Origin: Epithemia pelagica
Taxonomy: Eukaryota > Protista > Bacillariophyta
NCBI GenBank assembly: GCA_946965045.2
Contig: OX337234.1
Coordinates: 1,550,001 to 1,614,000 of the forward strand
Length of the DNA stretch: 64,000 nucleotides
Reading direction: 5' to 3'
The stretch's first letter is position 1; each line of letters opens with the position of its first letter. A program made the position numbers and the translations under genes. Under the pieces are notes generated by a model, which saw only the letters and a program-made list of their open reading frames with translations, did no database searches and was not told the origin of the DNA. Shown piece after piece: positions 7,851-64,000 of this stretch.

Positions 7851-8579
7851 ATGCATGCAAGGAAGTTGTCAATCCGTCGGATACTGATGGTTAGAATGTC
7901 CTCCTCGGTCGTTCGCTACCGTGTTGGACTTGATATTTGCCATCAATATGCGAAGGCAAGCACAGTTCACACCGGATGTGTGCCAAGAAGGTTTTTGTCC
8001 ACCGACAACACGTCACCTCCTTTGAATCATGCGAAATCAAGGTCATGGAGCATTCCTTCTCCGACATGGTCTATCCGTGAAATGATGGACACAACACATA
8101 AGAGTGCGTCGCCTACTCATCACGACGATCGGGAAGAAGAAGAGTCTTCGTCTTCACTTCCACCCTTACGAACCTTGGCCAAGAGATCGTTGATACATCT
8201 CGATGGTGAACGCGACTCCAAACGAGTGTCAGAAATCAAGAAAGATTTGGATCAAATGTGGAACTGGATTCAGAGTGTTCGGAAGTTTCTAGTTTCATTG
8301 GAACGCGACGGCCCAAAAAGCCTGTCCGATGAAGAGAAGAATCTTTCAATTCATCTGGCAAATCTTTCTGACGAGGATATTTACGATGTTCCTCGTGGTG
8401 TGGAAGCTGGCGCTCCAACTAGATCCGATGTTTCTCGAACGGAGACAGAAAATTTTACTCCCACACAATCGGTTGCGGAAGCCGAACAGGTTTGGCGCTC
8501 AGTTCTTGAACCAAAGACGAAACTTGTAGGTGGACACCAATACTTCGTCATTGCTACATCTAAGACCAAAAAGTCCTAA
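7851..8579 (+). CDS. Probable Glu-tRNA(Gln) amidotransferase subunit C (GatC-like), likely mitochondrial; start codon uncertain
   Basis: LAKRSLIHL...DLDQMWNWIQSV and C-terminal GHQYFVI resemble GatC. The N-terminus is Arg/Ser-rich and presequence-like. Confidence 0.55.
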   Translation: MHARKLSIRRILMVRMSSSVVRYRVGLDICHQYAKASTVHTGCVPRRFLSTDNTSPPLNHAKSRSWSIPSPTWSIREMMDTTHKSASPTHHDDREEEESSSSLPPLRTLAKRSLIHLDGERDSKRVSEIKKDLDQMWNWIQSVRKFLVSLERDGPKSLSDEEKNLSIHLANLSDEDIYDVPRGVEAGAPTRSDVSRTETENFTPTQSVAEAEQVWRSVLEPKTKLVGGHQYFVIATSKTKKS

Positions 8580-12862: not shown

Positions 12863-12967
12863 TTTGATGATGTGTCTAGTGAATAAAACCAGTTAACCCT
12901 TTAAGTAGTTAAAACACCCCCTATCATTTCTAAATGAGACAAACGATGAATGAGTTCATAACTTGTT

Positions 12968-42200: not shown

Positions 42201-43790
42201 CCTGGTTGGAATCATGCGTCTGGCCATCTTGTATGGGACGTGAAGATGGACTTCACGAGAAAGGCAAGGTGGGTACTTGATGGCCACAAGTGCCCCAATC
42301 CTATAGGGTCAACCTTTGCCGGTGTTGTGTCTCGAGAAAGTGTCCGCATAGCGTTCACATATGCAGCACTGAATGGGTTGGATGTGTTTGCGGCTGACAT
42401 CCGCAATGCATATCTCCAAGCTCCGTCGTCCCAGAAGGATTATGTGATATGTGGTCCTGAGTTTGGACTCGAAAACGTCGGCCGTGTGGCACTCATACAT
42501 CGAGCATTGTATGGGGGAAAAACGGCGGGAAAGGACTTTAGGAACCATCTGCGCTCCTGCATGCATCACCTAAAGTTCCAGTCCTGCCCAGCGGACCCTG
42601 ATGTATGGATGAGGCCAGCTGAAAAGTCGGATGGAGCAACCTATTATGAGTATGTGCTACTATATGTCGATGATGCGCTAGTGGTGAGCGAGAACGCTGA
42701 ACGCATTCTACGTGATGAGATCGGGCGATACTTTGAGCTGAAAGAGGAGTCAGTTGGACCTCCCACGCTCTACCTTGGTGGTCGAGTCCGAAAAGTCACA
42801 CTGGATAATGGGGTGAAGGCATGGGCCTTTAGCTCATCGCAATATGTCCAAGCGGCCGTAAGAAATGTTGAGGAGTACCTTGGTCGAGAAGAAAACCAGA
42901 GGTGGAAGCTACCAGCTAAGGCAGACACTCCAATGCAATCAACATATCGACCAGAGCTCGACGTGACGCCCGAATTGACACCAAAATTGGCATCGTACTA
43001 CCAGTCCCTGATTGGGGTGCTGAGGTGGATTGTTGAGTTGGGAAGAGTTGATATCTGTCTGGAAGTGTCGCTCCTCTCATCCCATCTTGCATTGCCGAGA
43101 GAAGGCAACTTTGGTCAGGTCCTCCAAATCTTCTCTTATTTGAAGAAGTACCACAATACGGAATTGGTATACGATCCGTCTGATCCCGTAGTGGAAGAGA
43201 GTGATTTCGAGCGAAAGGATTGGACAGCATCCGAGTTTGGGCATGTTGATGGGAAGGAAGAGTTACCACCGAATATGCCTGAGCCTAGAGGACAAGGTTT
43301 CATTATCCGAGCGAAAGTCGATGCAGATCACGCGTTGGATACCGTGACAAGGCGCTCACGGACTGGTTTTCTTGTTTATCTAAACAGTGCACTGGTGCAT
43401 TGGTGGAGCAAGAAGCAGACAAGTGTCGAATCTTCATCTTTTGGTTCAGAATTCATTGCGATGAAGCAATGTTGTGAATATCTGAGAGGACTCCGTTACA
43501 AATTGAGGATGCTGGGAATACCATGTGATGGGCCAGCGCTCATATATGGCGACAACCAGTCAGTCTTAGCCAATACCACCATTCCCGATTCCACATTGAA
43601 GAAAAAGAGTCAAAGCATAGCCTTTCACTTTGTTCGTGAGGGATCAGCGCGGGATGAATGGAGGACAACCTATGTAAACACGCACAATAACGAAGCGGAC
43701 CTTCTTACGAAACTGTTGCCAAACGGTGAAAAGAGAGAGGGTTTTGTGCGCAATCTACTGCATCACATCTTCGGATCTAATGCAGAGTGA
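39297..43790 (+). CDS. pol: copia pol (protease, integrase, chromo-like module, reverse transcriptase, RNase H); open 1497 codons
   Basis: ELDSHAN (protease); DTLFA...DMSGE...WSNKAE (integrase); ADIRNAYL and LYVDD (RT); VDADHA and IYGDNQSV (RNase H). Confidence 0.95.
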   Translation: MNISSTTSRGGGQSLQPDTTTWDPGKIQISQQHFAALVAASDMTHDDMEEMSTDGGSRTELDSHANMPVVGRNVYVLNWTGRTVDVSPFSPDYSTTTAELVDAALKFDCPYEGKTYILVVRNAIYVKAMEHNLIPPFLMREAGIIVNDKPKIHTVDPTTDDHAVVFPTTGFRIQLSLWGVFSFFSTQQPSEDDLMAGLDTYVLTPTIWNPHSDAYATNEANMLDWEGNMREPRDRVTVIIDDIPDDKDEHGRYTISSMEAEAIDGVCQCRAQMDARSADGWDKSTNHLSVISSTLSESNMARAMEERAEFGYDAIGIGELTAPYDDDPLIVTDASSSEEQSDGSNDELDENDWMELEMSDDLDNIFMSSTVDASNPRGVDAAHLSKIWRISHEDATRTLAATTQNSMRPMDPSLSQNYGTNDRMLRYRRINDYFFMDTLFATSKGGKSSRGNTCCQLFVTDKGFIYVVPLKRKSEVMHAVKQFAKEIGAPQAIICDMSGEQMKPDVKLFLNDIGTTLRALEEGTPWSNKAELYIKLMKEAVRKDMRESHSPLPFWDYCLERRVRIYNLTARDHPKIWGTNPYTMTMGEEGDISNLCQYKWYEWCYCREHTAPFPHNQEVLGRVLGPARGEGNEMAQWVLKANRRVVPRRSVRPLHASEENSPTEIKKRQLFDKLIERRYGTSTSPPPKISKPNDDEFENYEDNDEPSRPVPEIEDMVDTNGRLLNQLPAYDRLLQAEVQMQLGEEYRTGKVTRRALGPDGKVTGKYDHNPFLNSMIYEVEFADGQVREYSANLIAENMLTQVDSEGFSTTIMEGIVDHRRDDAVAVPKNEKYIITRSGQRRLRKSTAGWKLLIRWKDESESWIKLSEMKESHPVETAEYAKAKGIDDEAAFCWWVPYTLKKRDAIIAAVKTRVRKTTHKYGIEVPTSVEHAKELDRRNGNTMWMDALAKEMYNVGVAFEVLDEGQKAPPGWNHASGHLVWDVKMDFTRKARWVLDGHKCPNPIGSTFAGVVSRESVRIAFTYAALNGLDVFAADIRNAYLQAPSSQKDYVICGPEFGLENVGRVALIHRALYGGKTAGKDFRNHLRSCMHHLKFQSCPADPDVWMRPAEKSDGATYYEYVLLYVDDALVVSENAERILRDEIGRYFELKEESVGPPTLYLGGRVRKVTLDNGVKAWAFSSSQYVQAAVRNVEEYLGREENQRWKLPAKADTPMQSTYRPELDVTPELTPKLASYYQSLIGVLRWIVELGRVDICLEVSLLSSHLALPREGNFGQVLQIFSYLKKYHNTELVYDPSDPVVEESDFERKDWTASEFGHVDGKEELPPNMPEPRGQGFIIRAKVDADHALDTVTRRSRTGFLVYLNSALVHWWSKKQTSVESSSFGSEFIAMKQCCEYLRGLRYKLRMLGIPCDGPALIYGDNQSVLANTTIPDSTLKKKSQSIAFHFVREGSARDEWRTTYVNTHNNEADLLTKLLPNGEKREGFVRNLLHHIFGSNAE

Positions 43791-44075: not shown

Positions 44076-47000
44076 AACACGCAGGATCAAAATTCGGAGC
44101 CCTATAGCACAGTGATTGAGAGTCTTACAAGTGCCCTCCAAAAAATAGATACGCAGCAGAACCAGAATAGTCAGAGATCACTGTCACTTCGGCTTCTGAT
44201 TAGAGCTGGATTCGCTGCCAACAAGAATAATATTGTAGGTGCATCACAAGCATCCTTCTTGACAAGGAATCACTCCAGGTTCCTATTTTCCCACCAGTTT
44301 GCGTATGTTCCTCTATGTGACCTGGTCAAAATTATCACAACGAATTTCGTTGATAGAACTTATGTTCGATCATACAAGGGCAAGCCATATGCTGATTCAT
44401 GGCTTTGCATTACCTATGTCGACCACAAGCTTTATCTGATCTCTGCCCAAAGCTATTCTTTGAACAATATGAGGTAATCAGAGGGTCTTCAAATGGCGAT
44501 GATGAGTTATTTGACTTTGAGGACAATCGACATTTCACTCATCCGGCACAAGTCAATAGACGCGAAGATGGGGAAATTTCCAGATTCCAAGTGATCCGGG
44601 AGCGGAAAATACCACGACTGGCATGGGTCCCTAACCATTGTCTTGTTCTTGATGCCGCAAAATTCGACGGGACAGACATTTTAACCTGTGAGAATATCAC
44701 TGAAGAAATGGAGGACTATGCATTACACATTTTTGCTCTTTGTCACTCCTACATTTGTGTTGATGATTTGAAGTTGAATGATTCCTTTGTCCTGAAACTC
44801 CGACAACTTTTTGAAGCTGGACATTTAGACGACCATGTTCAATATCTTCAAAACATGCAGGATGCAAGGGGCAACTACATGAGAGTCACACCTACCGAGG
44901 ATGACCTTCAAGCGTGTAGCATTCCTTTTCAATATGATGATGAAGATGATGGTATAGACGAGAATACCAAAAAATCAGGAAACGATTTGCCACCTGAGGA
45001 AGAAGAGCAGTTACAAAGTTTGCTGTTACAAGGACAAAAGCTTGACATTTTCCTTTCATTGATTGAAGATGACCTTCAAGCATTTGACCCAACTCAAGGT
45101 GTCAATTCCAATTCCTTTCAAGAAAATTTTGTGCCGTCGTCCATTTCATTCAAAAGCGTTCAGTTGCGAGGAAGCTACAGATGTGGGACAGATCAACTAT
45201 GCAATCTTCCATATCAATATTCAGATCAGGCTACTAGTCCCTTTCTTCCCCTAGATTCGACTGATGCGGTAGATCTTGATGGCAACAATGTTGATGAAGA
45301 TGAACTAAACATCATGGAAATGCCGCCAATTCCAAGTCCCACAGACATTGTTCACGTCCTTTTACAGCGGAATTGTTTGTCGCCAGAAAGATCTATTCAA
45401 GTCATGGCTTCATCAAAACGACTAGCAGAAGCAAATGGATCTGCTCTAAGCATATGTGCATGGGCTGAAAAAACTGGATTAGACAGTGAACAAAGAAGGG
45501 CATTTGAGGTTTTTGCCGGTTCATTCGTTCTTTCATTTTTCAACGACGCAAATGAAACTACCACACCAGGACCCCAGCTCCCACGAACTCGGAATAGAGT
45601 TTTCCTCAAAGAAAAAGTGCGGCTTTTGAAATTGTGCGGTAAGCTCCCAGTGAGGGCGACACAGCAGAGAATGTGTGATATGAATCATAAAAACTTGGTG
45701 TGTTTTCTTCATGGACCTGGTGGGAGTGGTAAATCGGCCGTTCTTGAATTACTACAGCTATATGCACGAGAATATTGCAATCATTTGAATTACGAGTACA
45801 ACAGTGAAACAATTGTGGTAACGGCAATGAGTGGTGTTACCGCAACTCTCATTGGAGAACGTACTACACATTCTGCTGCTCATCTTAACAAGAAAGCGTC
45901 AAAGATTCCATATGAAGACAAGTTCCGTTGGAAGCACACACGTCTCTTGATCGTGGATGAGATCTCTTTCGCCTCGAAATCTGAAATCAAAACACTGGAT
46001 GCTCATGTCAAATTAGTCAAGGACGCACCTTTCAAAGATTATGGCGGGATTGATGTTATCTTCTGTGGAGATATGAGGCAGCTGCAACCAGGCGGAGGAA
46101 AAGTCAAAATTTATGAATGTGAATTTCCTGAGTTCCATGGAATGATCAATTGTTACCTTGAATTGAATGCTATGCATCGATTCTCAAATGATGTCATGTG
46201 GGGAGAATTATTGTGCAGGTTTCACAATGGCAAACTGACTGAAGACGACATGGACACAATAAACACGCGGGTTGTCGATCAAAACGGCTTGTCACTACCA
46301 AATGATATACGGTATGTATCATACAGGAATATAGACAGGGTGTCTATTAATACTGGACTCTTCCTCAAGCATCTACAATCAGCACCTGATCAATCCTATA
46401 TCGAGAACAACTGTGTTCTTGTCCTTTCAAGCTGCTTGAAAATCAAAGAAGGTGATTGCCAATACCGGTCACCATCGAATGCCTGGGAAACGTATCTTTG
46501 GCAAAGCTGTGGGGAAGGGCAGTGCAAACCATCGGGATTTTCAGGTCGGTTTGACCCAGCAATGCTGCTATTCTACAACCGTCCAGTGTTGGTGAATAAC
46601 AACAAAAATGTGGAAAAGATGATTGCAAACGGTACTCGAGCATTTCTTCAGACAATTCATTTGAAGCCCGATGAAACATACACAATGTGCACTGTCGATT
46701 CCATTGCAGTTCCTACTGTAAGAGCTGACCAAATTCTGAAGGTAGAACTCCACTTTGAATCACCTAATGCAACAGGCAACACATTCAAAATTGCACCAAA
46801 AGAACACACCTTCATTGCCGATGTACCCTATCCCCGATCTCTCCAAACTGGGAGTAATCAAGACACCACACAACAACTTCATATGAAGGGACTACAACTT
46901 CCTTTCATTTGCAATAATGCAACAACGGGACACAAGCTTCAAGGAGCTTCGGTACAAACTTTGTTTGTACACACACGGTCAATGGTGGAGAATTGGTCAT

Positions 47001-47599
47001 ATGTGGTTCTCTCCAGGGTAAAAACTATCTCGGGATGGATGGTATCGGGTCCACGGCCTATAGTGCCAGAAAAGAGACTCCTCTATCGAAACTGAAAGCA
47101 AAGCTTCCATATACTATATGAAAGTCGCTAGGTTTAGGGTTCCTAGCTTAATACGGCCCCGCGGCTTCCACCTAGTTCTTACTTACGGCTAAAGTAACTT
47201 AGTAGGAAAGTTAGGAGCTTTTTTGCACTTTGCCCGAGTTTTTGGTGGTTTTACCTAGTTTCCCCTCTAACTTACTTACTGCTTCTCTAAAACCCTATTA
47301 CCCATTTTTTAAGCTCATTGGTCTGGGGCTATTGCTAGCGGAATTAACCTGGACGGTAGTAGAAGTTTACATGTACATGTAGCTGTTTCAACATCATATC
47401 TAGTCTATGAGTAGAACAAGCCTATGTCAATGCGGGTACAAGTTTACATGTATCTCTTCATAGCAGTATCGATCATGCAGCATCCATCCAACCTTTAGTT
47501 ACCTTTATATCCTAGCTTGTTGCTGACATAGAATGTTTTCACCTGATTGGGTAGACTGTGTGTGGTTGAAAGAGGAAGATACTGCACCTGCCCGTGGAG

Positions 47600-50500: not shown

Positions 50501-50834
50501 TGCATTCAGCAGTACATTTGAAATTGCACCAAAAGAGCACAGTTTCATTGCAGAAGTACCCTATCCCGGGTCTCTCCAATCTGGTAGTGACAACAATACC
50601 ACACAGTCTCTTCATATGAAGGGACTACAACTTCCTTTCATTTGCAATAATGCAACAACGGGACACAAGCTTCAAGGAGCTTCTGTACAAACTTTATTTG
50701 TACACACATGTTCAATGGTGGGGAATTGGTCGTATGTTGTTCTCTCCAAGGTGAAAACTATCTCGGGATTATTTCTAGGAAAACCATTGGAGAAACGATT
50801 CCTCAAAGTTCTCAATGCTATTCCCGACGTCTAA
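47600..50834 (+). mobile_element. Second, internally deleted and degraded Helitron2-like copy
   Basis: The upstream region matches 32600-34830. Rep start remnant at 48770; helicase fragments 48875..49375, 49404..49820 and 49875..50834, with a frameshift and a nonsense codon. Confidence 0.85.
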
Positions 50835-50875
50835 GGAGGTTTTTTGAAGATAAGTGACTGGAATTCCACCAACAG

Positions 50876-51599: not shown

Positions 51600-53150
51600 C
51601 CCTCCTATCATCCCACAAGACAATTTTCAACGCTCTGAACGACTGGATTGGTGGTTCTGTTTGAAAAAGGGCAAAGACACCAAGTTGGTGCACCCATTTC
51701 ATTCTCCCATCAATTTCCATCGACCAAAACTGGTTGGATTGCTGGATTGCCGCTGCTTCTTCCCTCCTATTATCCCATAAGACCATTTTCAACCATCTGA
51801 ACGGTCGGATTGGTGAGGATTCTATTGAACAAAGGGCATAAGACACCAAGTTGGTGCACCCACTTCCTTCACCCCTCCATTTCCATCGACCAAGACCCTG
51901 TTGGATTGCTGTGTTGCTACTCCTTCTCAATTGGAACAAGGGCCGAGACACCAAGTTGGTGCACCCATTTCCTTCACCCCTCCATTTCCGTCGACCAAGA
52001 CCCTGTTGGATTGCTGTGTTGCTACTCCTTCTCGATTGGAACAAGGGCCGAGACACCAAGTTGGTGCACCCATTTCCTTCACCCCTCCATTTCCATCGAC
52101 CAAGACCCCGTTGGATTGCTGTGTTGCTACTCCTTCTCGATTGGAACAAGGGCCGAGACACCAAGTTGGTGCACCCATTTCCTTCACCCCTCCATTTCCA
52201 TCGACCAAGACCCTGTTGGATTGCTGTGTTGCTACTCCTTCCCGATTGGAACAAGGGCTGAGACACCAAGTTGGTGCACCCATTTCCTTCACCCCTCCAT
52301 CTCCATCGACCGAGACCGTGTTGGATTGCCGTGTTGCTACTCCTTCCCGATTTGAACAAGGGCCGAGCCACCAAGTTGGTGCACCCATTTCCTTCACCCC
52401 TCCATCTCCATCGACCAAGACCCTGTTGGATTGCTGTATTGCCACTCCTTCTCGATTGGAACAAGGATCAAGACACCAAGTTGGTGCACCCAATTTTCAC
52501 TCCTCCATCTCCACCGACCAAGACCTTGTTGGATTGCTGTGTTGCTACTCCTTCCCGATTGGAACAAGGGCCGAGACACCAAGTTGGTGCACCCATTTCC
52601 TTCACCCCTCCATCTCCATCGACCGAGACCGTGTTGGATTGCCGTGTTGCTACTCCTTCCCGATTTGAACAAGGGCCGAGCCACCAAGTTGGTGCACCCA
52701 TTTCCTTCACCCCTCCATCTCCATCGACCAAGACCCTGTTGGATTGCTGTATTGCCACTCCTTCTCGATTGGAACAAGGATCAAGACACCAAGTTGGTGC
52801 ACCCAATTTTCACTCCTCCATCTCCACCGACCAAGACCTTGTTGGATTGCTGTGTTGCTACTCCTTCCCGATTGGAACAAGGGCCGAGACACCAAGTTGG
52901 TGCACCCCTCTCCTTCCCTCCTTCATCTACATCAACCAAGAAGACCCCATTGGATTGCTGTATCTTGATTGGTGGTTCTGTTGAAGGGCCGAGCCACCAA
53001 GTTGGTGCACCCATTTCCTTCACCCCTCCATCTCCATCGACCAAGACCCTATTGGATTGTTGTATTTGCTACTGATTCTTGACTGGAAGGACCGAGACAT
53101 CAAGTTGGTACACCCATTTCCTTCAATCCTCCATCCCTATTGACCAAGAC
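51600..53150 (+). repeat. 105-bp minisatellite, 14 core motifs, with a duplicated 313-bp trimer
   Basis: CACCAAGTTGGTGCACC-type cores at 51678, 51844, 51949, 52054, 52159, 52264, 52369, 52474, 52577, 52682, 52787, 52890, 52995 and 53098. Confidence 0.95.
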
Positions 53151-53269
53151 CCTCCAGGGTTTCCATCACGCAAGCTTGAGAAACGGTAGTATCAAGTTGC
53201 ATCGGAACCCTGCATCGAAAGAAAATTTCTCCTTGTTTCTTCCCCAAGCTGATTGAATCGCACGTTAAT

Positions 53270-56200
53270 ATGGCTGATTCGGTAGAAGATTCCGATCAAT
53301 ATTTCCCAGACTTGATATGTTATGAATACACAATCGAGTGGTATCGTTCTGTTTATTCCAACACTGATAATTGGACAGATTTCTCCACTACATATGGAGG
53401 TGAAACCATATTCGTATCCCTCTTGCGCTGTGGATCAAGTATTTTCAGTGATATCGCCTCGCATGCTGCTGTTTGTTTCCCGAAGATACTGAGACTTGTA
53501 GAGACGATCGAAGAACAACAAGAGGGAAACAAGAGTGACGGAGCTGGTAGTTTTATTTCACCAGGAATCGACCTATTCGAACAAACTCTATATGGAGACG
53601 CACTTCGTCTGTGGGACAAGGAATTCCCGTGCACGACAAGATCAAAGTCGAGCGCAAGCTTTACTCGATCCCTCAAGGTGTTTCTTGGAGCCCATCCTAT
53701 GCTCGCTGATATTGTCCTCAACTCGTATTCGGTGGAGAGACGGCTTAATGTCGTGGCTGCAAAAATATTGGACTACATGACCTCTGATAGATCAAAGTTT
53801 CCGAAAGACAGAACAATACCAGTCCGAGAAATGGTTTGGAGCGTTCAACATATGGCAGCTGTCTATCGGGTATTGGAATCTGACTCCTATGAAATGGAAG
53901 GAGTCGATGTTGAAAAAGCATTAGCCCTTACACTTCCTGATTGCTGGTTTCGTCCTTATTTTGACATACCAAGAGCTGCTAAGTATCCCGCAAACGACTA
54001 TTCCAATTTGGCGGTTCTAATTTCATATTACCAGACGACGGAACGGGAATACGCTACAAAGACGAAGGAGTATCAGAAGGGGCGACATGAACAACGATCT
54101 CAAGACAGGAAACGCCGTAAACAAGCGTCAGACAGTAAATGTGATCTTGCAACAATTTCTACCATTTTCACTGTTTCAAATAACGAGAGCAAATCACCAT
54201 CTCAGTCTCTGTCAGCGACCGAGGAGGATCGGAGTTCCATTTTCGATACTCTTGCATTGAAAAAGAAACCACAAAAAGGAAAACAAGACGACAAAAAATC
54301 TTCCTCTCAATCGAAGGTGGGTCTGTTGGAAAGTAAATCACATGTTGACCATGGTAGCGACAAACCTAAAGGAATACCAAAGAAACCACCTCCTCTCAAG
54401 AATAAACCTGGTCCATCAGACGACCTTGCTTCTTTCACTAACGACCGTTTGATTCATATGGCTAACTGGTCCCTCAAACAGTCGATGTCAGCGATCAATG
54501 AAGCTTGGGATCTCTGTAAAGAAAGTGCCGTTAGACGTAAGGGAAGCATCCATGAAGTTGTTTTGCGATTTGTCTGTACCTGTGCTTGCTGTTCCAACAA
54601 GAATGGTTCTCTACAACATGACAATGGGAAAATGGACGTCCTTTTTGTCCCACATCGCCAGTACAGACGAAACCTTTTGCTACGGACGAATACTCAAGAG
54701 ACGACTAAGTTTAAGGGGATCCCTCCCCTCATATTCAGGTTGATGCTTGTGCTGGTGGTTCATAAATGGCACAACAAGTCCGTTTCCTTTGAGCAAATCG
54801 ACGAAGATAGTCTGAGAATGGACACAACGACTGCAATGGATTTGAGTTCGTCGTCTTCCGATACTACATTGGTCGTCGTCACTACCAAGTATGAAGCTTT
54901 TGATCCCGTCTTAATCCTCGTACAAGCACATCAAAGAGAAGTGTTGATATTCGATCCATTATCGACAAGGGATATTCGCTCGTGGAGGCCTACAGTGATT
55001 CGATGTCTACGGAAACTAAGGCTATTGGACGACGATAAGAAAATCCAATCATTCTTGAGCGTTGATATAAAGGAAGAGCTCGTTGGATGTGACTGGAGAT
55101 TCATTTATAAGAAGTATCCGAATCCGGTGGCACCAAGTGCGTGTCCGCTTCCCCAAGTATCAATAATATGTGTGATCGACGAGATCCTGTCAAAGGCGTC
55201 CCCTAATATGTCCTGTGATCAGATGATGGGGAAATGGGCTCAAGAATTGCCATCGTGTAGGCGAGAATGTCACAAGGCCTGCAATCATATCGTGAGTACG
55301 GCTATCAATAGAGCGAAACGTGATTCGACTCTGCGTGTATGTTTCAAGGACGTCAATGACGATACACGTCCAAGGATCAAACGCAGTCGCCGGTTTATAA
55401 TGGAAGGGAAAGATCGAGGGGAGGTAATGGAAGATGTGCTGGATTCCGACGATGAACGATTCGAGGACATTAAAGTGATACAAGAGATTACAGGAGCGGA
55501 CAAGGCGCTCGAACGACTTCGCGAAGATCGGCGATTTTTGGATCTGGTACGAACATTGAACAATGAAGATCAGAAAGAGGCACTCTGTTCCACTTGTGGG
55601 ACCTCATTGCTTAAAAAGGATCTGGATAGAAGTCGGACCTGTTCTATCGTGAGTTGGACAAGGCAAGAAACCTCCAACTGTCCTCATTATCATTGTCCAA
55701 CATGTACTTTCATCCGGAATTCGGTGAAGAATCGATTTTGTTCCATATGTGGTCATAGTCATGCTGAGCTAATACCACACGATCTACAAGAGACAGAATT
55801 AATCGCGAAGAAAGACAAGACAATCGTCCTAGACAAATATGATGAAGACTCCGAACAATATTGTGCCATATGCCATGGACAGCGTCCTAACGACTGTCGG
55901 ATCGAGAGATGCGGGCACAAGTTTTGTCGGGTGTGTCTTGGTCATGTCCTTACCACCGAAAAACAAGTTCCTATGGGGAAACAGAAATCGACACCTCCTG
56001 AAATGAACGAGAGTTGCCCCTTGTGCAACGGAGATATTGCTTCGATTACGTACACCAATGCACATGATGGTTCAGTTGAAGAAGTTGGTGTGTCAAAAGA
56101 GGAACATCGTGGTCTCTACAGACCGGTCCCTGTATTTCCAGAGACAGCATGGGGTCGTGTACCGTTGGAAACTCTGCGTTTCATGAGTAAAGAACAACAA

Positions 56201-56278
56201 AGGGAGAAGAATAGGAGAGACCAAACTGATTCTTCTACTGTCACGATCAGTAACACAGAAGCGAAAAGGCAAGTCTGA
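53270..56278 (+). CDS. 1002-aa ORF with two C3HC4 RING-like fingers and a degenerate Ulp1-like segment; possibly exon 1 of a fusion gene
   Basis: CSTC...CPHYHCPTC...CSIC (55586-55750) and CAIC...CGHKFCRVC...CPLC (55862-56025). Confidence 0.7.
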   Translation: MADSVEDSDQYFPDLICYEYTIEWYRSVYSNTDNWTDFSTTYGGETIFVSLLRCGSSIFSDIASHAAVCFPKILRLVETIEEQQEGNKSDGAGSFISPGIDLFEQTLYGDALRLWDKEFPCTTRSKSSASFTRSLKVFLGAHPMLADIVLNSYSVERRLNVVAAKILDYMTSDRSKFPKDRTIPVREMVWSVQHMAAVYRVLESDSYEMEGVDVEKALALTLPDCWFRPYFDIPRAAKYPANDYSNLAVLISYYQTTEREYATKTKEYQKGRHEQRSQDRKRRKQASDSKCDLATISTIFTVSNNESKSPSQSLSATEEDRSSIFDTLALKKKPQKGKQDDKKSSSQSKVGLLESKSHVDHGSDKPKGIPKKPPPLKNKPGPSDDLASFTNDRLIHMANWSLKQSMSAINEAWDLCKESAVRRKGSIHEVVLRFVCTCACCSNKNGSLQHDNGKMDVLFVPHRQYRRNLLLRTNTQETTKFKGIPPLIFRLMLVLVVHKWHNKSVSFEQIDEDSLRMDTTTAMDLSSSSSDTTLVVVTTKYEAFDPVLILVQAHQREVLIFDPLSTRDIRSWRPTVIRCLRKLRLLDDDKKIQSFLSVDIKEELVGCDWRFIYKKYPNPVAPSACPLPQVSIICVIDEILSKASPNMSCDQMMGKWAQELPSCRRECHKACNHIVSTAINRAKRDSTLRVCFKDVNDDTRPRIKRSRRFIMEGKDRGEVMEDVLDSDDERFEDIKVIQEITGADKALERLREDRRFLDLVRTLNNEDQKEALCSTCGTSLLKKDLDRSRTCSIVSWTRQETSNCPHYHCPTCTFIRNSVKNRFCSICGHSHAELIPHDLQETELIAKKDKTIVLDKYDEDSEQYCAICHGQRPNDCRIERCGHKFCRVCLGHVLTTEKQVPMGKQKSTPPEMNESCPLCNGDIASITYTNAHDGSVEEVGVSKEEHRGLYRPVPVFPETAWGRVPLETLRFMSKEQQREKNRRDQTDSSTVTISNTEAKRQV

Positions 56279-56375
56279 TCTATATTATTAGTACTCTCCA
56301 TCAAGAGAAGAGACGTTCTAGTTTCAGGTATTTGGCATTTCTATCCGCGTACTAACTATGTCTTTGTACTACAAG

Positions 56376-58401
56376 AAGTTCGGAAACGACAAGCACACAT
56401 CCTAGAGCGGAGGTGACATCCATAAAGAAGAAACATATTCGTCCCACTTTCGAAGATATGGCATCGGATCAGACGATTTCGAGACTCACATGTACACAGG
56501 AGACCTATGCCAAGTACGAAAAGAAGAAAACGCAACGTATAAGTGAAACAGTGGTCGCCATGTCGCATCGGAACGAAAGTGCACATGAAAGAATGTGCTA
56601 CTTTGTTTTGGACAAGGACATCGATCGAATAAGGATGTTATCGCATCTACTGCAGCGTTGCTTTGGAAGTTACGACGATCAAGATTGTTTTGGTTTGTCG
56701 TTCGAAAAGGATATGATACAACGGAAGGTCGATATGAAAGATATCCCGAGTGTCTTTGCACGTATCCCAGAAATATCCAACAAGGCTATGGATGATGTTG
56801 TGGAGACAAGAGATGACGTTGTCAGTCATTCGAACATTATACCAGAATGTTGTCCTATGATTGTTGCTCAAATCCCGGTGGGTCTTGTAACTAAAACGAT
56901 CCACAATGCATTCATATTGGAATGTACCTTGTCCAGGACAAGATATAGAGAAATCAGGAAGAAGACAACACATGTGTCGTCCTCTATATTCGAAGATCCT
57001 GTCATGATGATTCGGACTAACAAAAATTTATGCCTTGACGAAAATGATCACCTCTTCAGAGATATCATTATCCTCTTCCCTTTGGCTGGGGTTTTTTATA
57101 CATGTGTGCGTCAATTTCAAGAACTATCAAGGTCGTCCGACATCACATCGTCATCAGTCCCACTACCGTTGTCTTGGTTACGTCTGCGACACAAAGATGG
57201 CCAACCTGCAAGTAATGCATTCTTGAAAAAGATTCATCGTTGTTGGAGTCTAGATTGGGGTGAACATCTTACTAATAATGGCAAAACTGTGAAGGAATGT
57301 TACCAATGGTCCGATGTGGAGGATGGGAGCCCACTTTTACCGCCTGACGTGTACCTCGATGACAAGGGAAAGATCGAAAAGCCAGGGAATAAACAGTCAA
57401 TGACACATCACATGTCACGGGAACAATATCGAACAAGGCTGATTATAAACAGGAATGACTCAGATAAGAAAGGGAGTCGGAGATATGTTAGTGGTGCTTT
57501 GCATCGAAACCTATGGTTGCAAATGTCGTCCGGTACACACCCAAGGCCACTGGTATACGACCATCGTATTCGGGGAAACATTACTTTCATTGTTCGGACA
57601 CGCCGAAATGATGGGAGACCAGAGTCACTTAGTTACATTCGAGTGACATCCCTGGTACGGAAGGACCAGACGTTGTTGGACCTATTACACCACAGAGCAA
57701 GGGAATTTACACGTACTGGGTCTCTGAGAAAGGCGGCCAATGCCAGATGTAATAAGGGAGACTTGGGATCTATGACTACTGTTGGTAATACTGCGGCAAG
57801 AGGAAACGGTTCTACTTTCGTTTCCGAGAAATTATTTACAAAGGACAAGACATTATCGATGATACTGCCGAAAATAAGTACAGCGGCAAAAAGGTTCTGT
57901 GAACGCGAATATCCTGGGGTGATTCCAACATTCCGGTATCTAGAAGATTCAGCTGGCGAAGAAATGCCTAGTGAATTCGGAGGAAGAGTCGGAGGTATGA
58001 CCTCAGCCATTACCCTGAGTTTGAACCTCATGAACACGACACATTATGATGTTCACGATGGTTCTGTTTCATTCGCAATCTGGACAGAGACAATCCCAGG
58101 TGACTCCCAAAATTGGTTCTTTGTTTTGCCGAATATTCTTGTGGAGTATGATGGTACTACATACCATGGTCTTTGTATACAACTATTTCATGGGGTTTCG
58201 GTTCTATGGGATGGACGTGTGATCCGGCATGGAACGTCAATACACACACAAAGACAACATAAAGATGGGAACATGAAGAACGACACTATTAGTTGGTTTT
58301 GGGCAGTAAGTTCTATGTCTATGAATGCAACTGTCAACGAAACAAGAGAGGACCATGGTATAACCAAGACGGTTCAAGGCATTCGTAGCGGAACATTATA
58401 A
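56376..58401 (+). CDS. TET/JBP-like 2OG-Fe(II) dioxygenase ORF; possibly exon 2 of the RING gene (first own ATG at 56458)
   Basis: LSLNLMNTTHYDVHD (HxD, 58042-58050), FFVLPN, LWDGRVIRHGTS (distal His 58228-58230). Confidence 0.65.
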
Positions 58402-58939
58402 ATTCTTTCTGGATGCATTCATCACCAAGGAAAAACAAATTCAGGGAGCATTCCACGTCTTTTGCTTCTTACGAGCACTCTGGTGTGATACACCAGCAGC
58501 ATGTTTCTTTGGATTTTCCTGTGCTATATGATAACATGCAGTAAAAATAGGCATATAGTTGCGAAAGGAGCAACCAGGTGGTGAAGAAATCAGCCACAAT
58601 GCCCATTGTTTCTCGGTGTGCTATCACTGCTACGAAGACAAAACGAAACTTCAACATCAAATCGTGTATTCGAGATGAGATTCTATATTGCAACAGTATT
58701 CAACCAAGACGAGTCTTCCATCTTTTATACGATATCGAACGGTCTTCTCGAAGAGTAATGGTAAGAGGATTTCTGTTTGCGGTTGCAAGAGGATGTACTT
58801 CGGAGAAAACAACTGATCCTGACTATATCTCAGTTCTTATCGTTTTTATGGGGAAAAATTCAAATAACGCTAAGAATTTCTGAGTCTTGTTTGCTTTGTC
58901 ATACGATTCAATGGAGGATAAAATGAGCCTACGAAATTT

Positions 58940-61900
58940 TTAGTCAATGTCAAGGCCAACGCTATATCGGTATGGTCTATTGCAAGCCTTTCTCGTCACA
59001 GATCACGAGATCCGATCCTATGGTATCCATAAAAATGATACACTAAGGGTCTCTTCCAAAATCTGGACCGATTCCATGAAGAGAAGGATCTCTTTGCTCC
59101 ATGTCCATACAATTTTGGCACGGCGACAACGCCAAACCGATCTGATCTATTGCAAGCCTTTATCTTGACGGCACATGAGATCAGAGCCTATGGTATACAT
59201 GGCTATGATATCCCGAGGATATGTACCAAGACCTGGGTCGATTCGATGAACAGAAAAATGTCTTTCCTCCAAGAAGTCTATGGAAGTTTGGGACGACGAC
59301 AACGCCGCACCGGTGTGGTCTACAACAAGAATTTAGGTCAATGATAGACGAGATCAGCGCCTATGACGTCCATGCCTATGATACCACAAGTGTCTCTACC
59401 AGTTTTGAAGCGATTCAATTTATAGAAGGGTGTCTTTGCTCCATGTCCATGGAAGTTTGGGACATCGACAACACGACACTGGTATGGTCTACAACAAGAC
59501 TTTTGGTCCGCGATAGACGAGTTCAGAGCCTATGACATCCATGCCTATGATACCCCAAGTGTGTCTACCGAAATTTGGAGCGATTCAAGTTATAGAAGGG
59601 TGTCTTTGCTACATGTCCATGGAAGTTTGGGATATCGACAACGCGAGACTGGTATGGTCTAAAACAAGACTTTTGGTCTGCGATACATGAGTTCAGAGCC
59701 TAAGACGTCCATTCCTGTGATACCCCAAGTGACTCTACAGAAATTTCGAGCAATTCAAGTTATAGAAGGGTGTCTTTGCTCCATGTCCATGGAAGTTTGG
59801 GACATCGACAACATGACACTGGTATGGTCTACAACAAGACTTTTGGTCCGCAATAGACGAGTTCAAAGCCTATGATCTCCATGCCTATGATACCCCAAGT
59901 GTGTCTACCGAAATTTGGAGCGATTCAAGTTATAGAAGAGTGTCTTTGCTCCATGTCCATGGAAGTTTGGTACAACGACAACGCCACACCGATATGGTCT
60001 ACAACAAGACTTTTGGTCCATGGTAGATGAGTTCAGAGCCTATGATATCCATGCCTATGATACCCCAAGTGGCTCTACCGAAATTTGGAGCGATTCAAGT
60101 TATAGAAGGGTGTCTTTGTTCCACGTCCATGGAAGTTTGGGACATCGACAACACGACACTGGTATGGTCTACAACAAGACTTTTGGTCCGCTATAGACGA
60201 GTTCAGAGCCTATGACATCCATGCCTATGATACCCCAAGTGTGTCTACCGAAATTTGGAGCGATTCAAGTTATAGAAGAGTGTCTTTGCTCCATGTCCAT
60301 GGAAGTTTGGTACAACGACAACGCCACACCGGTATGGTCTACTACAAGACTTTTGGTCCATGGTACACGAGTTCAGAGCCTATGACGTCCATTCCTGTGA
60401 TACCCCAAGTTTGTCTACCGAAATTTCGAGCGATTCAAGTTATAGAAGGGTGTCTTTGCTCCATGTCCATGGAAGTTTGGGACAACGACAACGCCACACC
60501 GGTATGGTCTACAAGAAGACTTTTGGTCCGCGATTACGAGTTCAGAGCCTATGATCTCCATGCCTATGATACCCCAAGTGTCTCTACCGAAATTTGGAGC
60601 GATTCAAGTTATAGAAGAGTGTCTTTGCTCCATGTCCATGGAAGTTTGGTACAACGACAACGCCACACCGATATGGTCTACAACAAGACTTTTGGTCCAT
60701 GGTAGATGAGTTCAGAGCCTATGATATCCATGCCTATGATACCCCAAGTGTGTCTACCGAGATTAGGAGCGATTTAAGTTATAGAAGGGTGTCTTTGCTC
60801 CATGTCCATGAAAGTTTGGTACAACGACAACGCCACACCGGTATGGTCTACAACAAGACTTTTAGTCCGCGATAGACGAGTTCAGAGCCTATGACATCCA
60901 TACCTATGATACCCCAAGTGTCTCTACCGAGATTTGGAGCGATTCAAGTTATAGAAGAGTGTCTTTGCTCCATGTCCATGGAAGTTTGGTACAACGACAA
61001 CGCCACACCGGTATGGTCTACAAGAAGACTTTTGGTCCGCGATTACGAGTTCAGAGCCTATGATCTCCATGCCTATGATACCCTAAGTGTCTCTACCGAA
61101 ATTTAGAGCGATTCAAGTTATAGAACGGTGTCTTTGCTCCATGTCCATGGAAGTTTGGTACAACGACAACGCAACAGTGGTATGGTCTACAACAAGACTT
61201 TTGGTCCGCGATTACGAGTTCAGAGCCTATGACATCCATGCCTATGATACCCCAAGTGTGTCTACCAAAATTTGGAGCGATTCAAGTTATAGAAGGGTGT
61301 CTTTGCTCCATGTCCATGGAAGTTTGGGACATCGACAACACGACACTGGTATGGTCTACAACAAGACTTTTGGTTTGAGATGCACGAGTTCAAGGCCCAT
61401 GACATCCATACCTATGATACCCCAAGTGTCTCTACCGAGATTTGGAGCGATTCAAGTTATAGAAGAGTGTCTTTGCTCCATGTCCATGGAAGTTTGGTAC
61501 AACGACAACGCCACACCGGTATGGTCTACAAGAAGACTTTTGGTCCGCGATTATGAGTTCAGAGCCTATGATATCCATGCCTATGATACCCCAAGTGTCT
61601 CTACCGAAATTTAGAGCGATTCAAGTTATAGAACGGTGTCTTTGCTCCATGTCCATGGAAGTTTGGTACAACGACAACGCCACACCGGTATGGTCTACAA
61701 CAAGACTTTTAGTCCGCGATAGACGAGTTCAGAGCCTATGACATCCATACCTATGATACCCCAAGTTTCTCTACCGAGATTTGGAGCGATTCAATTTATA
61801 GAAGGGTGTCTTTGCTCCATGTCCATGGAAGTTTGGGACATCGACAACGCGACACTGGTATGGTCTACAACAAGACTTTTGGTCCGCGATAGATGAGTTC

Positions 61901-64000
61901 AGAGCATATGATATCCATTCCTGTGATACCCCAAGTGTCTCTACCGAAATTTGGAGTGATTCAAGCTTTAGAATGGTGTCTTTGCTCTATGTCCATGGAA
62001 GTTTGGTACATTTGGAAGTTTGGGACATCGACAACACGACACTGGTATGGTCTACAACAAGACTTTTGGTCTGCGATACACGAGTTCAAAGTCTATGACA
62101 TCCATGCCTATGATACCCCAATTGTCTCTACCGGAATTCGGAGCGATTCAAGTTATAGAAGGGCGTCTTTGCTCCATGTCCATGGAAGTTTGGGAAATGG
62201 ACAACGCGACACTGGTATGGTCTACAACAAGACTTTTGGTCTGCGATAAACGAGTTCAGAGCCTATGACGTCCATTCCTGTGATACCCCAAGTGACTCTA
62301 CAGAAATTTCGAGCAATTCAAGTTATAGAAGGGTGTCTTTGTTCCATGTCCATGGAAATTTGGTACATCGACAACACGACACTGGTATGGTCTACAACAA
62401 GACTTTTGGTCCGCGATAGACGAGTTCAGAGCCTATGACATCCATGCCTATGATACCCCAAGTGTCTCTACCCCAAGTGTCTCTACCGAACTTTGGAGCG
62501 ATTCAAGTTATAGAAGGGTGTCTTTGCTCCATGTCCATGGAAGTTTGGGACATGACAACGCAACAGTGGTATGGTCTATAACAAGACTTTTGGTCTGCGA
62601 TAGACGAGTTCAGAGCCTATGACATCCATGCCTATGATACCCCAAGTGTCTCTACCGAACTTTGGAGCGATTCAAGTAATAGCAGAGTGTCTTTGCTCCA
62701 TGTCCATGGAAGTTTGGGACATCCACAAGGCGATACTGATATGGTCTACAACAAGACTTTTGGTTCGCGATAGACGAGTTCAGAGCCTATGACATCCATG
62801 CCTATGATACCCCAAGTGTGTCTACCGCAATTTAAAGCAATTTAAATTATAGAAGTTTGTCTTTGCTCCATGTCCATGGAAGTTTGGGACATCGACAACG
62901 CAACAGTGGTATGGTCTATAACAAGACTTTTGGTCCGCGATAGACGAGTTCAGAGCCTATGACATCCATGCCTATGATACCCCAAGTGTTTCTACCGAAA
63001 TTTGGAGCGATTCAAGTTATAGAAGAGTGTCTTTGCTCCATGTCCATGGAAGTTTGGTACAACGACAACGCCACACCGGTATGGTCTACAACAAGACTTT
63101 TAGTCCGCGATAGACGAGTTCAGAGCCTATGACATCCATGCCTATGATACCCCAAGTGTCTCTACCGAGATTTGGAGCGATTCAAGTTATAGAAGAGTGT
63201 CTTTGCACCATGTCCATGGAAGTTTGGTACAACGACAACGCCACACCGGTATGGTCTACAACAAGAGTTTTGGTCCGCGATAGACGAGTTCAGAGTTTAT
63301 GATATCCATGCCTATGATACCCCAAGTGTCTCTACCGAAATTCGGAGCGATTCAAGTTATAGAAGGGTGTCTTTGCTCCATAACCATGGAAGTTTGGGAA
63401 ATGGACATCGCGACACTGGTATGGTCTACATCAAGACTTTTGGTCTGCGATACACGAGTTCAGAGCCTATGACGTCCATTCCTGTGATACCCCAAGTGAC
63501 TCTACAGAAATTTCGAGCGATTCAAGTTATAGAAGGGTGTCTTTGCTCCATGTCCATGGATATTTGGTACATCGACAACACAATACTGGTATGGTCTACA
63601 ACAAGACTTTTGGTCCGCGATAGACGAGTTCAGAGCCTATGACATCCATGCCTATGATACCCCAAGTGTGTCTACCAAAATTTGGAGCGATTCAAGTTAT
63701 AGAAGGGTGTCTTTGCTCCATGTCCATGGAAGTTTGGGACATCGACAACACGACACTGGTATGGTCTACAACAAGACTTTTGGTTTGAGATGCACGAGTT
63801 CAAGGCCCATGACATCCATGCCTATGATACCCCAAGTGTGTCTACCGAGATTTGGAGCGATTCAAGTTATAGAAGAGTGTCTTTGCTCCATGTCCATGGA
63901 AGTTTGGTACAACGACAACGCCACACCGGTATGGTCTTCAACAAGACTTTTGGTCCGCGATAGACGAGTTCAGAGCCTATGACATCCATGCCTATGATAC
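58940..64000 (+). repeat. 170-bp tandem satellite, ~30 copies, continuing past the window end
   Basis: GAGTTCAGAGCC-type motif at 59519, 59689, 59859, 60029, 60199, 60369 and onward. The first 2-3 units are much more diverged. Confidence 0.97.

Follow-up and report, generated by a model that had tools for sequence, protein, structure and literature searches.

Tandem RING fingers and a TET/JBP-like dioxygenase as probable products of a single gene carried by a Plavaka-related transposon in a diatom-like alga

Two neighbouring open reading frames (ORF1 and ORF2) within a 64,000-nucleotide stretch of genomic DNA (the window) were interpreted, at a probability of about 0.72, as the two exons of one gene for a TET-type dioxygenase, carried as anti-silencing cargo by a Plavaka-type transposon. 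The transcript would be a single mRNA that is spliced at a 107-nt U2-type GC-AG intron and translated into a protein of 1674 residues. Of the original prediction made for this DNA, the intron (by comparison of paralogues), the RING fingers, the dioxygenase and the element-borne nature of the gene were supported, and a protease relic was not; no link to a Helitron was found.

Organization of the gene

ORF1 was listed among the window's reading frames at 53270-56278 (1002 aa), with the frame of ORF2 being open from 56356 to a stop codon ending at 58401. The predicted donor, TACTAAC motif and acceptor AG were all located in the window sequence, and excision of 56269-56375 was found by counting to join 2999 and 2026 nt into one 5025-nt frame whose only stop is terminal, as had been proposed. 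Exon 1 (53270-56268, plus strand) supplies amino acids 1-999 and two bases of codon 1000, and consists of approximately 760 N-terminal residues without a known fold followed by two RING fingers. Exon 2 (56376-58401, plus strand) supplies 674 codons and the stop, and encodes the TET/JBP-fold module, which in the predicted product is separated from the RING fingers by a basic linker, KKKHIRP.

Comparison of copies of the gene gave dN/dS values of 0.21-0.50 for exon 1/ORF1 (four copies compared) and of 0.13-0.28 for exon 2/ORF2. Values well below 1 in both frames indicate that selection acted on the protein during the spread of the family. Both exons were found to be intact and in phase in at least three copies, namely those of the window and of loci L001 and L002.

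The predicted GC-AG intron

The predicted intron (56269-56375, plus strand, phase 2), which was delimited from sequence and paralogue comparison, contains the stop codon of ORF1 (56276-56278). Its donor reads AAAAG/GCAAGT with the first intronic G at 56269, and a branch-point-like TACTAAC (56350-56356, plus strand) is situated 19 nt 5' of the acceptor AG (56374-56375). GC donors form a small minority among eukaryotic introns. As 36 formal GT/GC-AG combinations were found that also preserve the frame, frame restoration alone is weak evidence for a splice. What goes beyond chance is that diverged paralogues conserve this very donor and acceptor.

Three subfamilies (the window family, L026 and L007), with proteins only approximately 29-60% identical to one another, retain the GC donor, the acceptor and a branch-like TAAC. 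The branch-like counterparts are TATTAAC in L026 and GCTAAC in L007, at a similar spacing to the acceptor, and the corresponding introns are 107 nt (window), 105 nt (L026) and 72 nt (L007) long. In the window family the ORFs are shifted by 2 nt relative to each other, and in L026 and L007 they share a frame; splicing yields one continuous frame in each of the three. In all three subfamilies the RING ORF terminates in '(K/G)RQV', encoded by AGGCAAGT, while the adjacent residues differ; the 9-mer AAGGCAAGT would be expected 0.41 times per 64 kb when both strands are counted. The GC content of the intron is 37% compared to 44% for the exons, and in L001 a MITE lies within the intron with the frames on either side of it still open.

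The 5' part of the ORF2 frame was also examined. In the window, this frame has no ATG from the upstream stop at 56353 up to position 56458, and the 27 codons that follow the acceptor and precede the ATG there share 52% identity with L026 and can be aligned in L007 and L006 too. The methionine at 56458 is itself not conserved, with isoleucine, glutamate/lysine or a stop found in L006, L007 and L026, loci which are decayed by frameshifts, a Copia insertion and a stop. In two copies of the window subfamily, a 1-bp deletion 70 nt 5' of the donor would place the fusion out of frame. Three sequencing runs, all from one study and probably derived from DNA (longest contigs >440 kb), were found to contain the stretch, and the 56268/56376 joint was absent from them, as is expected for DNA; no RNA run was found to contain it. 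Taken on the conservation of these sites across three paralogous subfamilies, a GC-AG intron very probably joins both frames into one protein, in agreement with the original prediction.

RING fingers and the N-terminal region

Two strict C3HC4 matches were identified in ORF1 using the pattern C-x2-C-x(9-39)-C-x(1-3)-H-x(2-3)-C-x2-C-x(4-48)-C-x2-C, which was found in none of 2000 shuffles of this ORF. RING finger 1 (55586-55750, plus strand, aa 773-827) and RING finger 2 (55862-56026, plus strand, aa 865-919) are both present in L007 also, and the tandem arrangement first proposed is supported. In Pfam, RING finger 2 matched zf-C3HC4 with 23.8 bits when searched as a fragment (cut-off 21) and 19.1 bits in the whole ORF, with RING finger 1 giving weak zinc-ribbon matches only. 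Weak PDB matches to the RINGs of RING1B, BMI1 and Arkadia were obtained for the region of RING finger 2. The AlphaFold model of ORF1 was unusable (pLDDT 32.7).

A protease-like relic had also been suggested within ORF1, but no match to Peptidase_C48 or any other protease was found with Pfam, using fragments at E<=10. A domain of the Ulp1/C48 type, for which an Atlas lead of 0.79 was the single indication, was not supported.

The dioxygenase module

The AlphaFold model of ORF2 (pTM 0.82) was found with Foldseek to have TET2, CMD1, CcTet and NgTET1 as top matches, with an E value of 2e-10 for the alignment to the TET2 catalytic domain, which covers ORF2 aa 168-665 (56878-58371, plus strand). VIA-align of this model with TET2 (4nm6_A) gave a Z of 19.3 over 301 residues at an rmsd of 4.0 A, followed by CcTet (16.5), NgTET1 (16.2) and CMD1 (16.1), the next family being that of AlkBH3 and FTO with a Z of about 11.7-11.8. 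Predicted Fe(II) ligands are present as an HxD motif, H556-Y-D558 (58042-58050, plus strand), invariant in alignments of 37 and 10 members, and as a third ligand, H618 (58228-58230, plus strand), which follows R617, is invariant in alignment A6 and reaches a conservation of at least 90% in A2. Of the arginines considered as possible 2-oxoglutarate ligands, R457 is invariant in the family alignments, R617 is nearly invariant and R626 is not conserved.

At the sequence level, 616 representatives related to ORF2 were found at E<=1e-3. Neither ORF2 nor any of 37 relatives matched the Pfam families Tet_JBP (PF12851) and 2OG-FeII_Oxy_6 (PF20515), the latter being touched only by a distant relative, P0143 (21.5 bits, below the cut-off of 27). 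No PDB sequence match was obtained for ORF2, which is only 7-15% identical to any of the solved TETs. The proposal of a TET/JBP-like dioxygenase is supported by the modelled fold and the conserved HxD...H triad, but not by a Pfam Tet_JBP match.

Distant relatives of ORF2 (35-41% identity) are stand-alone ORFs of approximately 580 aa with their own ATG, an upstream in-frame stop and no RING. Diverged exon 1 homologues are situated on the upstream side of the TET-like ORF in L006, L007 and L026. As the more distant relatives stand alone, the RING fusion would be specific to subfamilies of this genome.

The carrier transposon

The gene is carried by a cut-and-paste element of 23-24 kb that has terminal inverted repeats and encodes a Plavaka-related transposase on the strand opposite to the gene. 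The left terminal repeat is the 9-bp CGTCTAAGG (50828-50836, plus strand), at which a sharp boundary of homology was observed in five copies with unrelated left flanks, and the element extends from 50828 beyond the end of the window at 64000. The opposite end was identified in L024 and L025, where the 9-mer CGTCTAAGG is found inverted, so that the ends read CGTCT..AGACG. Both of the copies for which the two ends are known possess 2-bp target duplications (CG/CG and TT/TT). With these ends and duplications, the gene is indeed element-borne, as originally proposed. A Helitron had been considered as the carrier, but the PIF1 ORF (44399-47095) lies outside of the element, to the left of 50828, and the left flanks of the other copies are unrelated.

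An 826-aa ORF of the element matches P0187 (E 3e-24), which in turn matches Pfam Plavaka PF18759 with 38.9 bits (cut-off 26.3). A 557-aa ORF next to it gave Atlas matches of 0.91-0.94, Plavaka/DUF6830 clusters among them. Neither of these two ORFs gave a match when scanned against Pfam directly.

The gene had been described as embedded among transposons and satellites; the satellites were found to be internal arrays of the carrier itself. A 105-bp tandem array of 12.6 copies (51841-53153; TRF) is situated just upstream of the gene, and at the equivalent place in L001, L002 and L004. A 170-bp satellite array of at least 27.6 copies (59276-64000; TRF) runs past the window end, and in all copies this array, 4-8 kb in length, separates the gene from the transposase. 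Convergent to the gene is the remnant of a Cys-rich 291-aa ORF (58441-58721, minus strand), from which approximately 600 bp have been deleted at 58620/58621; L001, L002 and L004 possess approximately 600 extra bp at this point, and in L002 the ORF is intact (12029-12904). The subfamily of the window is present in approximately 20 copies in the assembly, with clusters at 90% identity containing 17 members for ORF1 and 23 for ORF2, distributed over many contigs.

Proposed function and alternative readings

The predicted Fe(II)/2-oxoglutarate dioxygenase would oxidise a modified DNA base, most likely 5-methylcytosine (5mC), through which the element may resist methylation-based silencing, while the RING fingers may contribute ubiquitin-ligase or protein-docking activity. 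An extended form of this mechanism, which we regard as improbable, is that of a self-targeting eraser with two activities. In this form, the N-terminal region of approximately 760 aa would bind the 105-bp and 170-bp arrays inside the element, the TET module would oxidise methylated bases in cis, and the paired RINGs, being RING1B/BMI1-like, would ubiquitinate chromatin or the host methylation machinery. The transposon would then maintain its own activity by supplying the enzyme as well as the sites to which it binds.

It is quite unlikely that ORF1 and ORF2 are separate genes, carried together as partners without fusion, with ORF1 ending at 56276-56278 and ORF2 starting at the ATG at 56458. 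Each is complete with a stop and an ATG, the distant relatives of ORF2 stand alone, and the spliced joint is absent from the three runs, yet the peptide preceding this ATG is conserved where the ATG is not (L006, L007, L026), the gap from stop to ATG is just 179 nt, and in three subfamilies the 'RQV-stop' end falls on a conserved 9-mer of the splice donor. That the copy is a silent or decaying relic, with frames open only through the youth of the family and with splice and protein irrelevant today, is in our judgement highly unlikely. Truncation affects approximately half of the cluster members listed, the neighbouring Cys-rich ORF has been damaged in the window copy, two copies have the frameshift before the donor, and the older subfamilies (L006, L007, L026) are all decayed; against this stand the low dN/dS of both ORFs among copies and the three or more copies with both exons intact in phase.

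The spliced gene could also encode an enzyme with an activity other than 5mC demethylation, such as thymine hydroxylation, CMD1-like addition, or action on 6mA or RNA, and would then serve to mark the element instead of lifting its silencing. JBP enzymes carry out thymine hydroxylation, CMD1 adds a vitamin-C-derived group, and CcTet has both 5mC and 6mA as substrates. CMD1, CcTet and NgTET1 fit the modelled fold about equally (Z ~16), sequence identity to any solved TET is low, and the activity of NgTET1 extends to thymine (PMC12344493). This is considered somewhat unlikely, as TET2 is the best fold match and the transposon-borne TET/JBP enzymes of fungi have been interpreted as 5mC oxidases in the account of PMC12730594.

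Comparison with known systems

Genes of the TET/JBP type have been described in fungal DNA transposons, TET+ Plavaka among them (Iyer et al. 2014 as cited in, and Kojima 2025, PMC12730594). These share with the present element the cut-and-paste Plavaka lineage, 2-bp target duplications and a TET/JBP-fold cargo beside the transposase, and, as that account describes them, a proposed role in escape from methylation silencing. The host is a diatom-like alga here rather than a fungus, and the termini CGTCTAAGG..CCTTAGACG differ from those given for fungal Plavaka in section 3.2.2 of that paper (TGT..ACA for PlavakaA, CATCA..TGATG for PlavakaB). Unlike the fungal TET+ Plavaka, the element is 23-24 kb in length with two internal tandem arrays, its dioxygenase is predicted to be fused to two RINGs and a 760-aa region (Kojima 2025 nowhere uses the word RING), and the dioxygenase family escapes Pfam Tet_JBP and PF20515.

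Giant Plavaka elements with accessory genes PAG1-3 are described from the red alga Bostrychia moritziana (preprint 10.1101/2025.02.11.637652). According to the preprint's description, these are similar in being of large size (17-19 kb) and of the Plavaka lineage, in encoding an accessory protein with a 2OG-dependent oxygenase domain, and in having tandem repeat arrays that adjoin the oxygenase gene; its authors propose that this protein binds and modifies its own element. PAG3 is linked there to ParB proteins, with no RING reported in that description, and its likeness to ORF2 is one of description only. The Bostrychia three-gene cassette, which as described contains a 6mA/SET methylase gene, was not seen in the element reported here. 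The VANDAL transposons of Arabidopsis, which encode the anti-silencing factor VANC (as cited in the same preprint), share the concept of a DNA transposon whose product strips methylation from its own copies; VANC is an unrelated protein, neither an oxygenase nor a carrier of RING fingers.

Among characterized enzymes, TET2, CcTet, NgTET1 and CMD1 share with the ORF2 model a double-stranded beta-helix with TET-specific extra elements that set it apart from AlkB/FTO, in addition to the HxD...H metal triad. They differ from it in their low identity (7-15%), in the lack of a sequence-level match and in having no N-terminal RINGs. TET-carrying transposons have already been described in fungi. What is new here is the fusion to RINGs, together with the lineage and the termini, and the gene possibly represents transposon cargo that counters DNA-methylation silencing in a diatom-like alga.

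Gene structure and the predicted intron

The RING ORF (ORF1) was found to extend from an ATG at 53270 to 56278, encoding 1002 aa, and the TET-like ORF (ORF2) to lie in another frame that is open from 56356, has its first ATG at 56458 and stops at 58401. Between them, a donor site reads ...GCGAAAAG/GCAAGTCTGA... (slash, splice junction), with the G of its GC at 56269, followed by a branch-like TACTAAC motif at 56350-56356 and by an acceptor, ...TACTACAAG/AAGTTCGG, with its AG at 56374-56375. Removal of 56269-56375 (107 nt, phase 2) joins 2999 and 2026 nt into a frame of 5025 nt with a single terminal stop, giving 1674 residues, a product for which only length and stops were counted, by script, similarity searches having been performed with the exons separately. 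The ORFs, splice signals and phase-2 excision are thus as the original prediction of a cryptic GC-AG intron had described them. The G+C content of the intron is 37%, compared to 44% for the exons, and the 9-mer AAGGCAAGT has a chance expectation of only 0.41 per 64 kb.

Restoration of the frame was rejected as sufficient proof of splicing, being weak alone, given that the window offers 36 formal GT/GC-AG pairs that keep the frame. It is on the comparison of loci that the predicted splice depends, as no RNA run covers the ORF1-ORF2 stretch; the three runs that do cover it belong to one study, are not recorded as RNA and have contigs that are probably DNA, broken at variant sites, in which the 56268/56376 joint does not occur. 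Comparison was made, beside approximately 20 near-identical copies, with three older subfamilies of the same assembly, ERZ21939226 (L026, L007 and L006), all three decayed and each with a RING ORF ahead of a TET-like ORF. Identity to the window was 59-64%, 45-55% and 27-47% for ORF2, respectively, and approximately 30%, 29% and 23% for the ORF1 tail.

The L026 donor is GAAAAGG/GCAAGTCAGATCTATA, compared to GAAAAG/GCAAGTCTGATCTATA in the window, and TATTAACTATGC followed by ATAACAG/AAGTTTGGAAAC has as its window counterpart TACTAACTATGT...ACAAG/AAGTTCGGAAAC. The RING ORF of L007 ends in ...KREKRQV, compared to EAKRQV in the window, with a donor of GAGAAAAG/GCAAGTTTAA, a GCTAAC approximately 50 nt further on and an AATAG/ acceptor at 7920-7921. 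The GC-AG intervals of L026 (105 nt) and L007 (72 nt) each separate two ORFs in a common frame. With lengths of 107, 105 and 72 nt in the window family, L026 and L007, respectively, the intervals exactly cancel the differing frame offsets between the ORFs. Matching donor, branch and acceptor elements have thus been kept in three lineages despite strongly diverged coding flanks, and it is this conservation, not the restored frame, that favours the GC-AG intron of the original prediction.

The sequence preceding the ORF2 ATG is also supported as coding by three features. In the window, the stop at 56353 is followed by no in-frame ATG before 56458; the stretch of 27 residues that separates the acceptor from the ATG at 56458, which includes a basic KKKH.RP motif, is 52% identical in L026 and alignable in L007 and L006; and the start methionine of ORF2 is replaced by Ile in L007, Glu/Lys in L006 and a stop in L026. 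In two copies, a single base is deleted at window position 56199, a loss that would disrupt the fusion.

Other features of this region were noted. The L001 copy carries a MITE of approximately 340 bp (L001:7485-7823, corresponding to window 56281-56285), 12 nt into the predicted intron, with inverted ends AAGACTG(A/G)TTCCAT and TATA-like bases flanking the insertion, both frames being intact. In the decayed L026, the donor motif is present twice (5658-5666 and 5808-5816), exactly 150 nt apart, which suggests an internal duplication or recombination between subfamilies. A 143-nt gap in the transposase gene (L024, 9774-9916) was considered as an intron calibrator and rejected, being low-complexity, Lys/Glu-rich sequence with no clear intron.

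RING fingers of ORF1

Strict C3HC4 RING spacing fits two stretches of ORF1 (aa 773-827 and 865-919), a pattern that appeared in none of 2000 shuffled ORF1 sequences, and Pfam matched the second RING when searched with a fragment (23.8 bits, cut-off 21), in agreement with the tandem RING fingers originally proposed. A protease-like relic, also proposed for this ORF, found no backing: the first ~760 residues gave no family match, and an Atlas search with the N-terminal 740 aa returned non-significant scores of ~0.8. The AlphaFold model of ORF1, built on a shallow alignment, was unusable (pLDDT 32.7). Relatives of ORF1 were confined to assembly ERZ21939226.

A TET-fold module in ORF2

Pfam gave no match for ORF2, its halves or 37 relatives, nor did PDB sequence and profile searches with ORF2, and a word search found a 98% paralogue, one JGI protein and nothing else. 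An exhaustive representative search identified 616 relatives at E<=1e-3 (358 at E<=1e-10), mostly 500-700 aa in length; the family falls outside current sequence models. Alignments of 37 and 10 members showed H556 and D558 to be invariant and H618, R457 and R617 to be invariant or at least 90% conserved, with R457 and R617 as candidates for the 2-oxoglutarate-binding arginine.

The AlphaFold model of ORF2, built on the family alignment, had a pTM of 0.82 and a mean pLDDT of 75.8, exceeding 85 across most of residues 400-650. With this model, the first 22 PDB matches in Foldseek were TET2, CMD1, CcTet and NgTET1 (best E 2e-10), and VIA-align placed TET2 nearest (Z 19.3; 301 residues, 4.0 A), followed by CcTet (Z 16.5), NgTET1 (Z 16.2) and CMD1 (Z 16.1), with AlkBH3 and FTO at Z 11.8 and below. 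From the fold matches and the conserved residues, ORF2 is therefore predicted to be a dioxygenase of the TET/JBP fold, as had been claimed from the window sequence, and its metal triad (H556/D558/H618) is intact.

Relatives with and without RING fingers

Metagenomes and a Logan contig supplied ORF2 relatives at 35-41% identity, each of them a stand-alone ORF that begins at an ATG of its own, and in L026, L007 and L006 a RING ORF adjoins the TET-like ORF. Separate occurrence of the two ORFs in relatives had been taken by the original prediction as grounds for its refutation; the TET-like ORF stands alone in the former and next to a RING ORF in the latter, and judging from these sequences the RING-TET fusion is therefore lineage-specific. 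No match to ORF1 was found in long members of the ORF2 family, P0129 and P0143 among them, or in 16 metagenome loci of ORF2 relatives, which at 1-6.5 kb are too short to reveal RING linkage.

Among distant family members, P0143 (1607 aa) and P0138 (1165 aa) carry a DEAD/Helicase_C helicase fusion in place of the RINGs, P0143 being the sole member touching Pfam PF20515. Metagenomic loci of stand-alone relatives (L008:2454-2906, minus strand; L009:2470-3537, minus strand; and L010) have in common a downstream gene in convergent orientation whose Cys-rich C-terminus is CXC-like. As it bears no relation to the 291-aa ORF of the window element, this gene may form, with the ORF2 relative, a second conserved two-gene module. 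In the older subfamilies, the RING-TET linker (L007:8001-8540, L006:6400-6700) is enlarged by in-frame tandem peptide repeats, exemplified by NQDKVVAAEAN in P0036.

The carrier transposon

Clusters at 90% identity contained 17 members for ORF1 and 23 for ORF2 on at least 12 contigs, with approximately half truncated. Among four copies, dN/dS was 0.13-0.28 for ORF2 and 0.21-0.50 for ORF1; both frames were thus under protein selection during multiplication of the family, of which locus L003 is the window itself.

The left boundary at 50828 is sharp, common to copies with unrelated flanks, and reads CGTCTAAGGAGG..., and the opposite end, on the other strand, starts with CGTCTAAGGGCAGC; these matching ends form a 9-bp terminal inverted repeat. 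Both copies with two known ends are flanked by 2-bp duplications (ctg1087l, CG/CG, element of 23,191 bp; ctg1180l, TT/TT, 24,161 bp). From the left, the element consists of the inverted repeat with 1 kb of unique sequence, a 105-bp array (51841-53153), the RING-TET gene, a convergent Cys-rich ORF of 291 aa, a 170-bp satellite that starts at 59276 and runs past 64000 (its length elsewhere being 4-8 kb), a set of opposite-strand ORFs (346, 557 and 826 aa), and three small ORFs with the second inverted repeat. The 291-aa ORF is partially deleted in the window copy, where ~600 bp carried by L001, L002 and L004 are missing at 58620/58621 and the middle of the ORF is gone; contigs from sequencing runs show the undeleted form. 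Both the 170-bp 'satellite' and the 105-bp array belong to the interior of the transposon, and as satellite length differs among copies, the element spreads satellite arrays through the genome.

The 826-aa ORF matched P0187 (E 3e-24), which itself matches the Pfam Plavaka model (38.9 bits, cut-off 26.3), and Atlas matches of the 557-aa ORF include Plavaka/DUF6830 clusters. Direct Pfam scans of the 826-aa and 557-aa ORFs were blank, and Pfam gave no match for the ORFs of 291, 346, 305, 188 and 213 aa. Of the transposase linkages originally raised, Helitron was rejected because the PIF1-helicase ORF (44399-47095) lies outside the element, to its left, as does a Copia-type polyprotein ORF (RVT_2; 39297-43790), both unrelated to it; the linkage found is to a transposase that is probably Plavaka-related.

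Proposed function and comparison with known systems

We consider it probable (roughly 0.7) that a single spliced mRNA would be translated to a nuclear protein, the nuclear location being suggested only by the basic linker. Given the fold, the chances are about even that the C-terminal domain would oxidise a modified DNA base, most likely 5mC; more tentatively, such oxidation would weaken methylation-based silencing of the element. Recruitment of an E2, or docking of the protein on chromatin, may be the task of the RINGs, and the N-terminal region may be where the internal arrays are bound.

For active erasure of a host DNA-methylation mark by mobile elements, TET/JBP enzymes encoded by transposons offer the clearest candidates, and descriptions of them have been mainly fungal. 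Distinctive here are the diatom-like algal host, a giant carrier with repeat arrays of its own and the two-RING fusion. The relatives also define a TET-fold family that is large, with 616 representative sequences, and overlooked by current Pfam models. Were splice and activity both true, the element would provide a testable model of a transposon coupling base oxidation to ubiquitin signalling, and a source of new DNA-modifying enzymes.

In the literature searched, neither a TET-like enzyme fused to two RING fingers nor a tie between diatoms and Plavaka as carriers of such cargo was found. Kojima 2025 (PMC12730594) describes the capture of TET/JBP genes by many fungal DNA-transposon lineages, including Plavaka, with target duplications of 2 bp or 2-3 bp and termini of TGT..ACA or CATCA..TGATG; RING and algae are both absent from that paper. 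A preprint on Bostrychia (10.1101/2025.02.11.637652) describes red-algal Plavaka elements of 17-19 kb, whose accessory gene PAG3 has a 2OG-oxygenase domain and adjoins tandem arrays. The present element resembles these known Plavaka systems in its probable lineage, short duplications and the idea of cargo, but is set apart from them by its host, its termini, its internal arrays and the fusion to RINGs.
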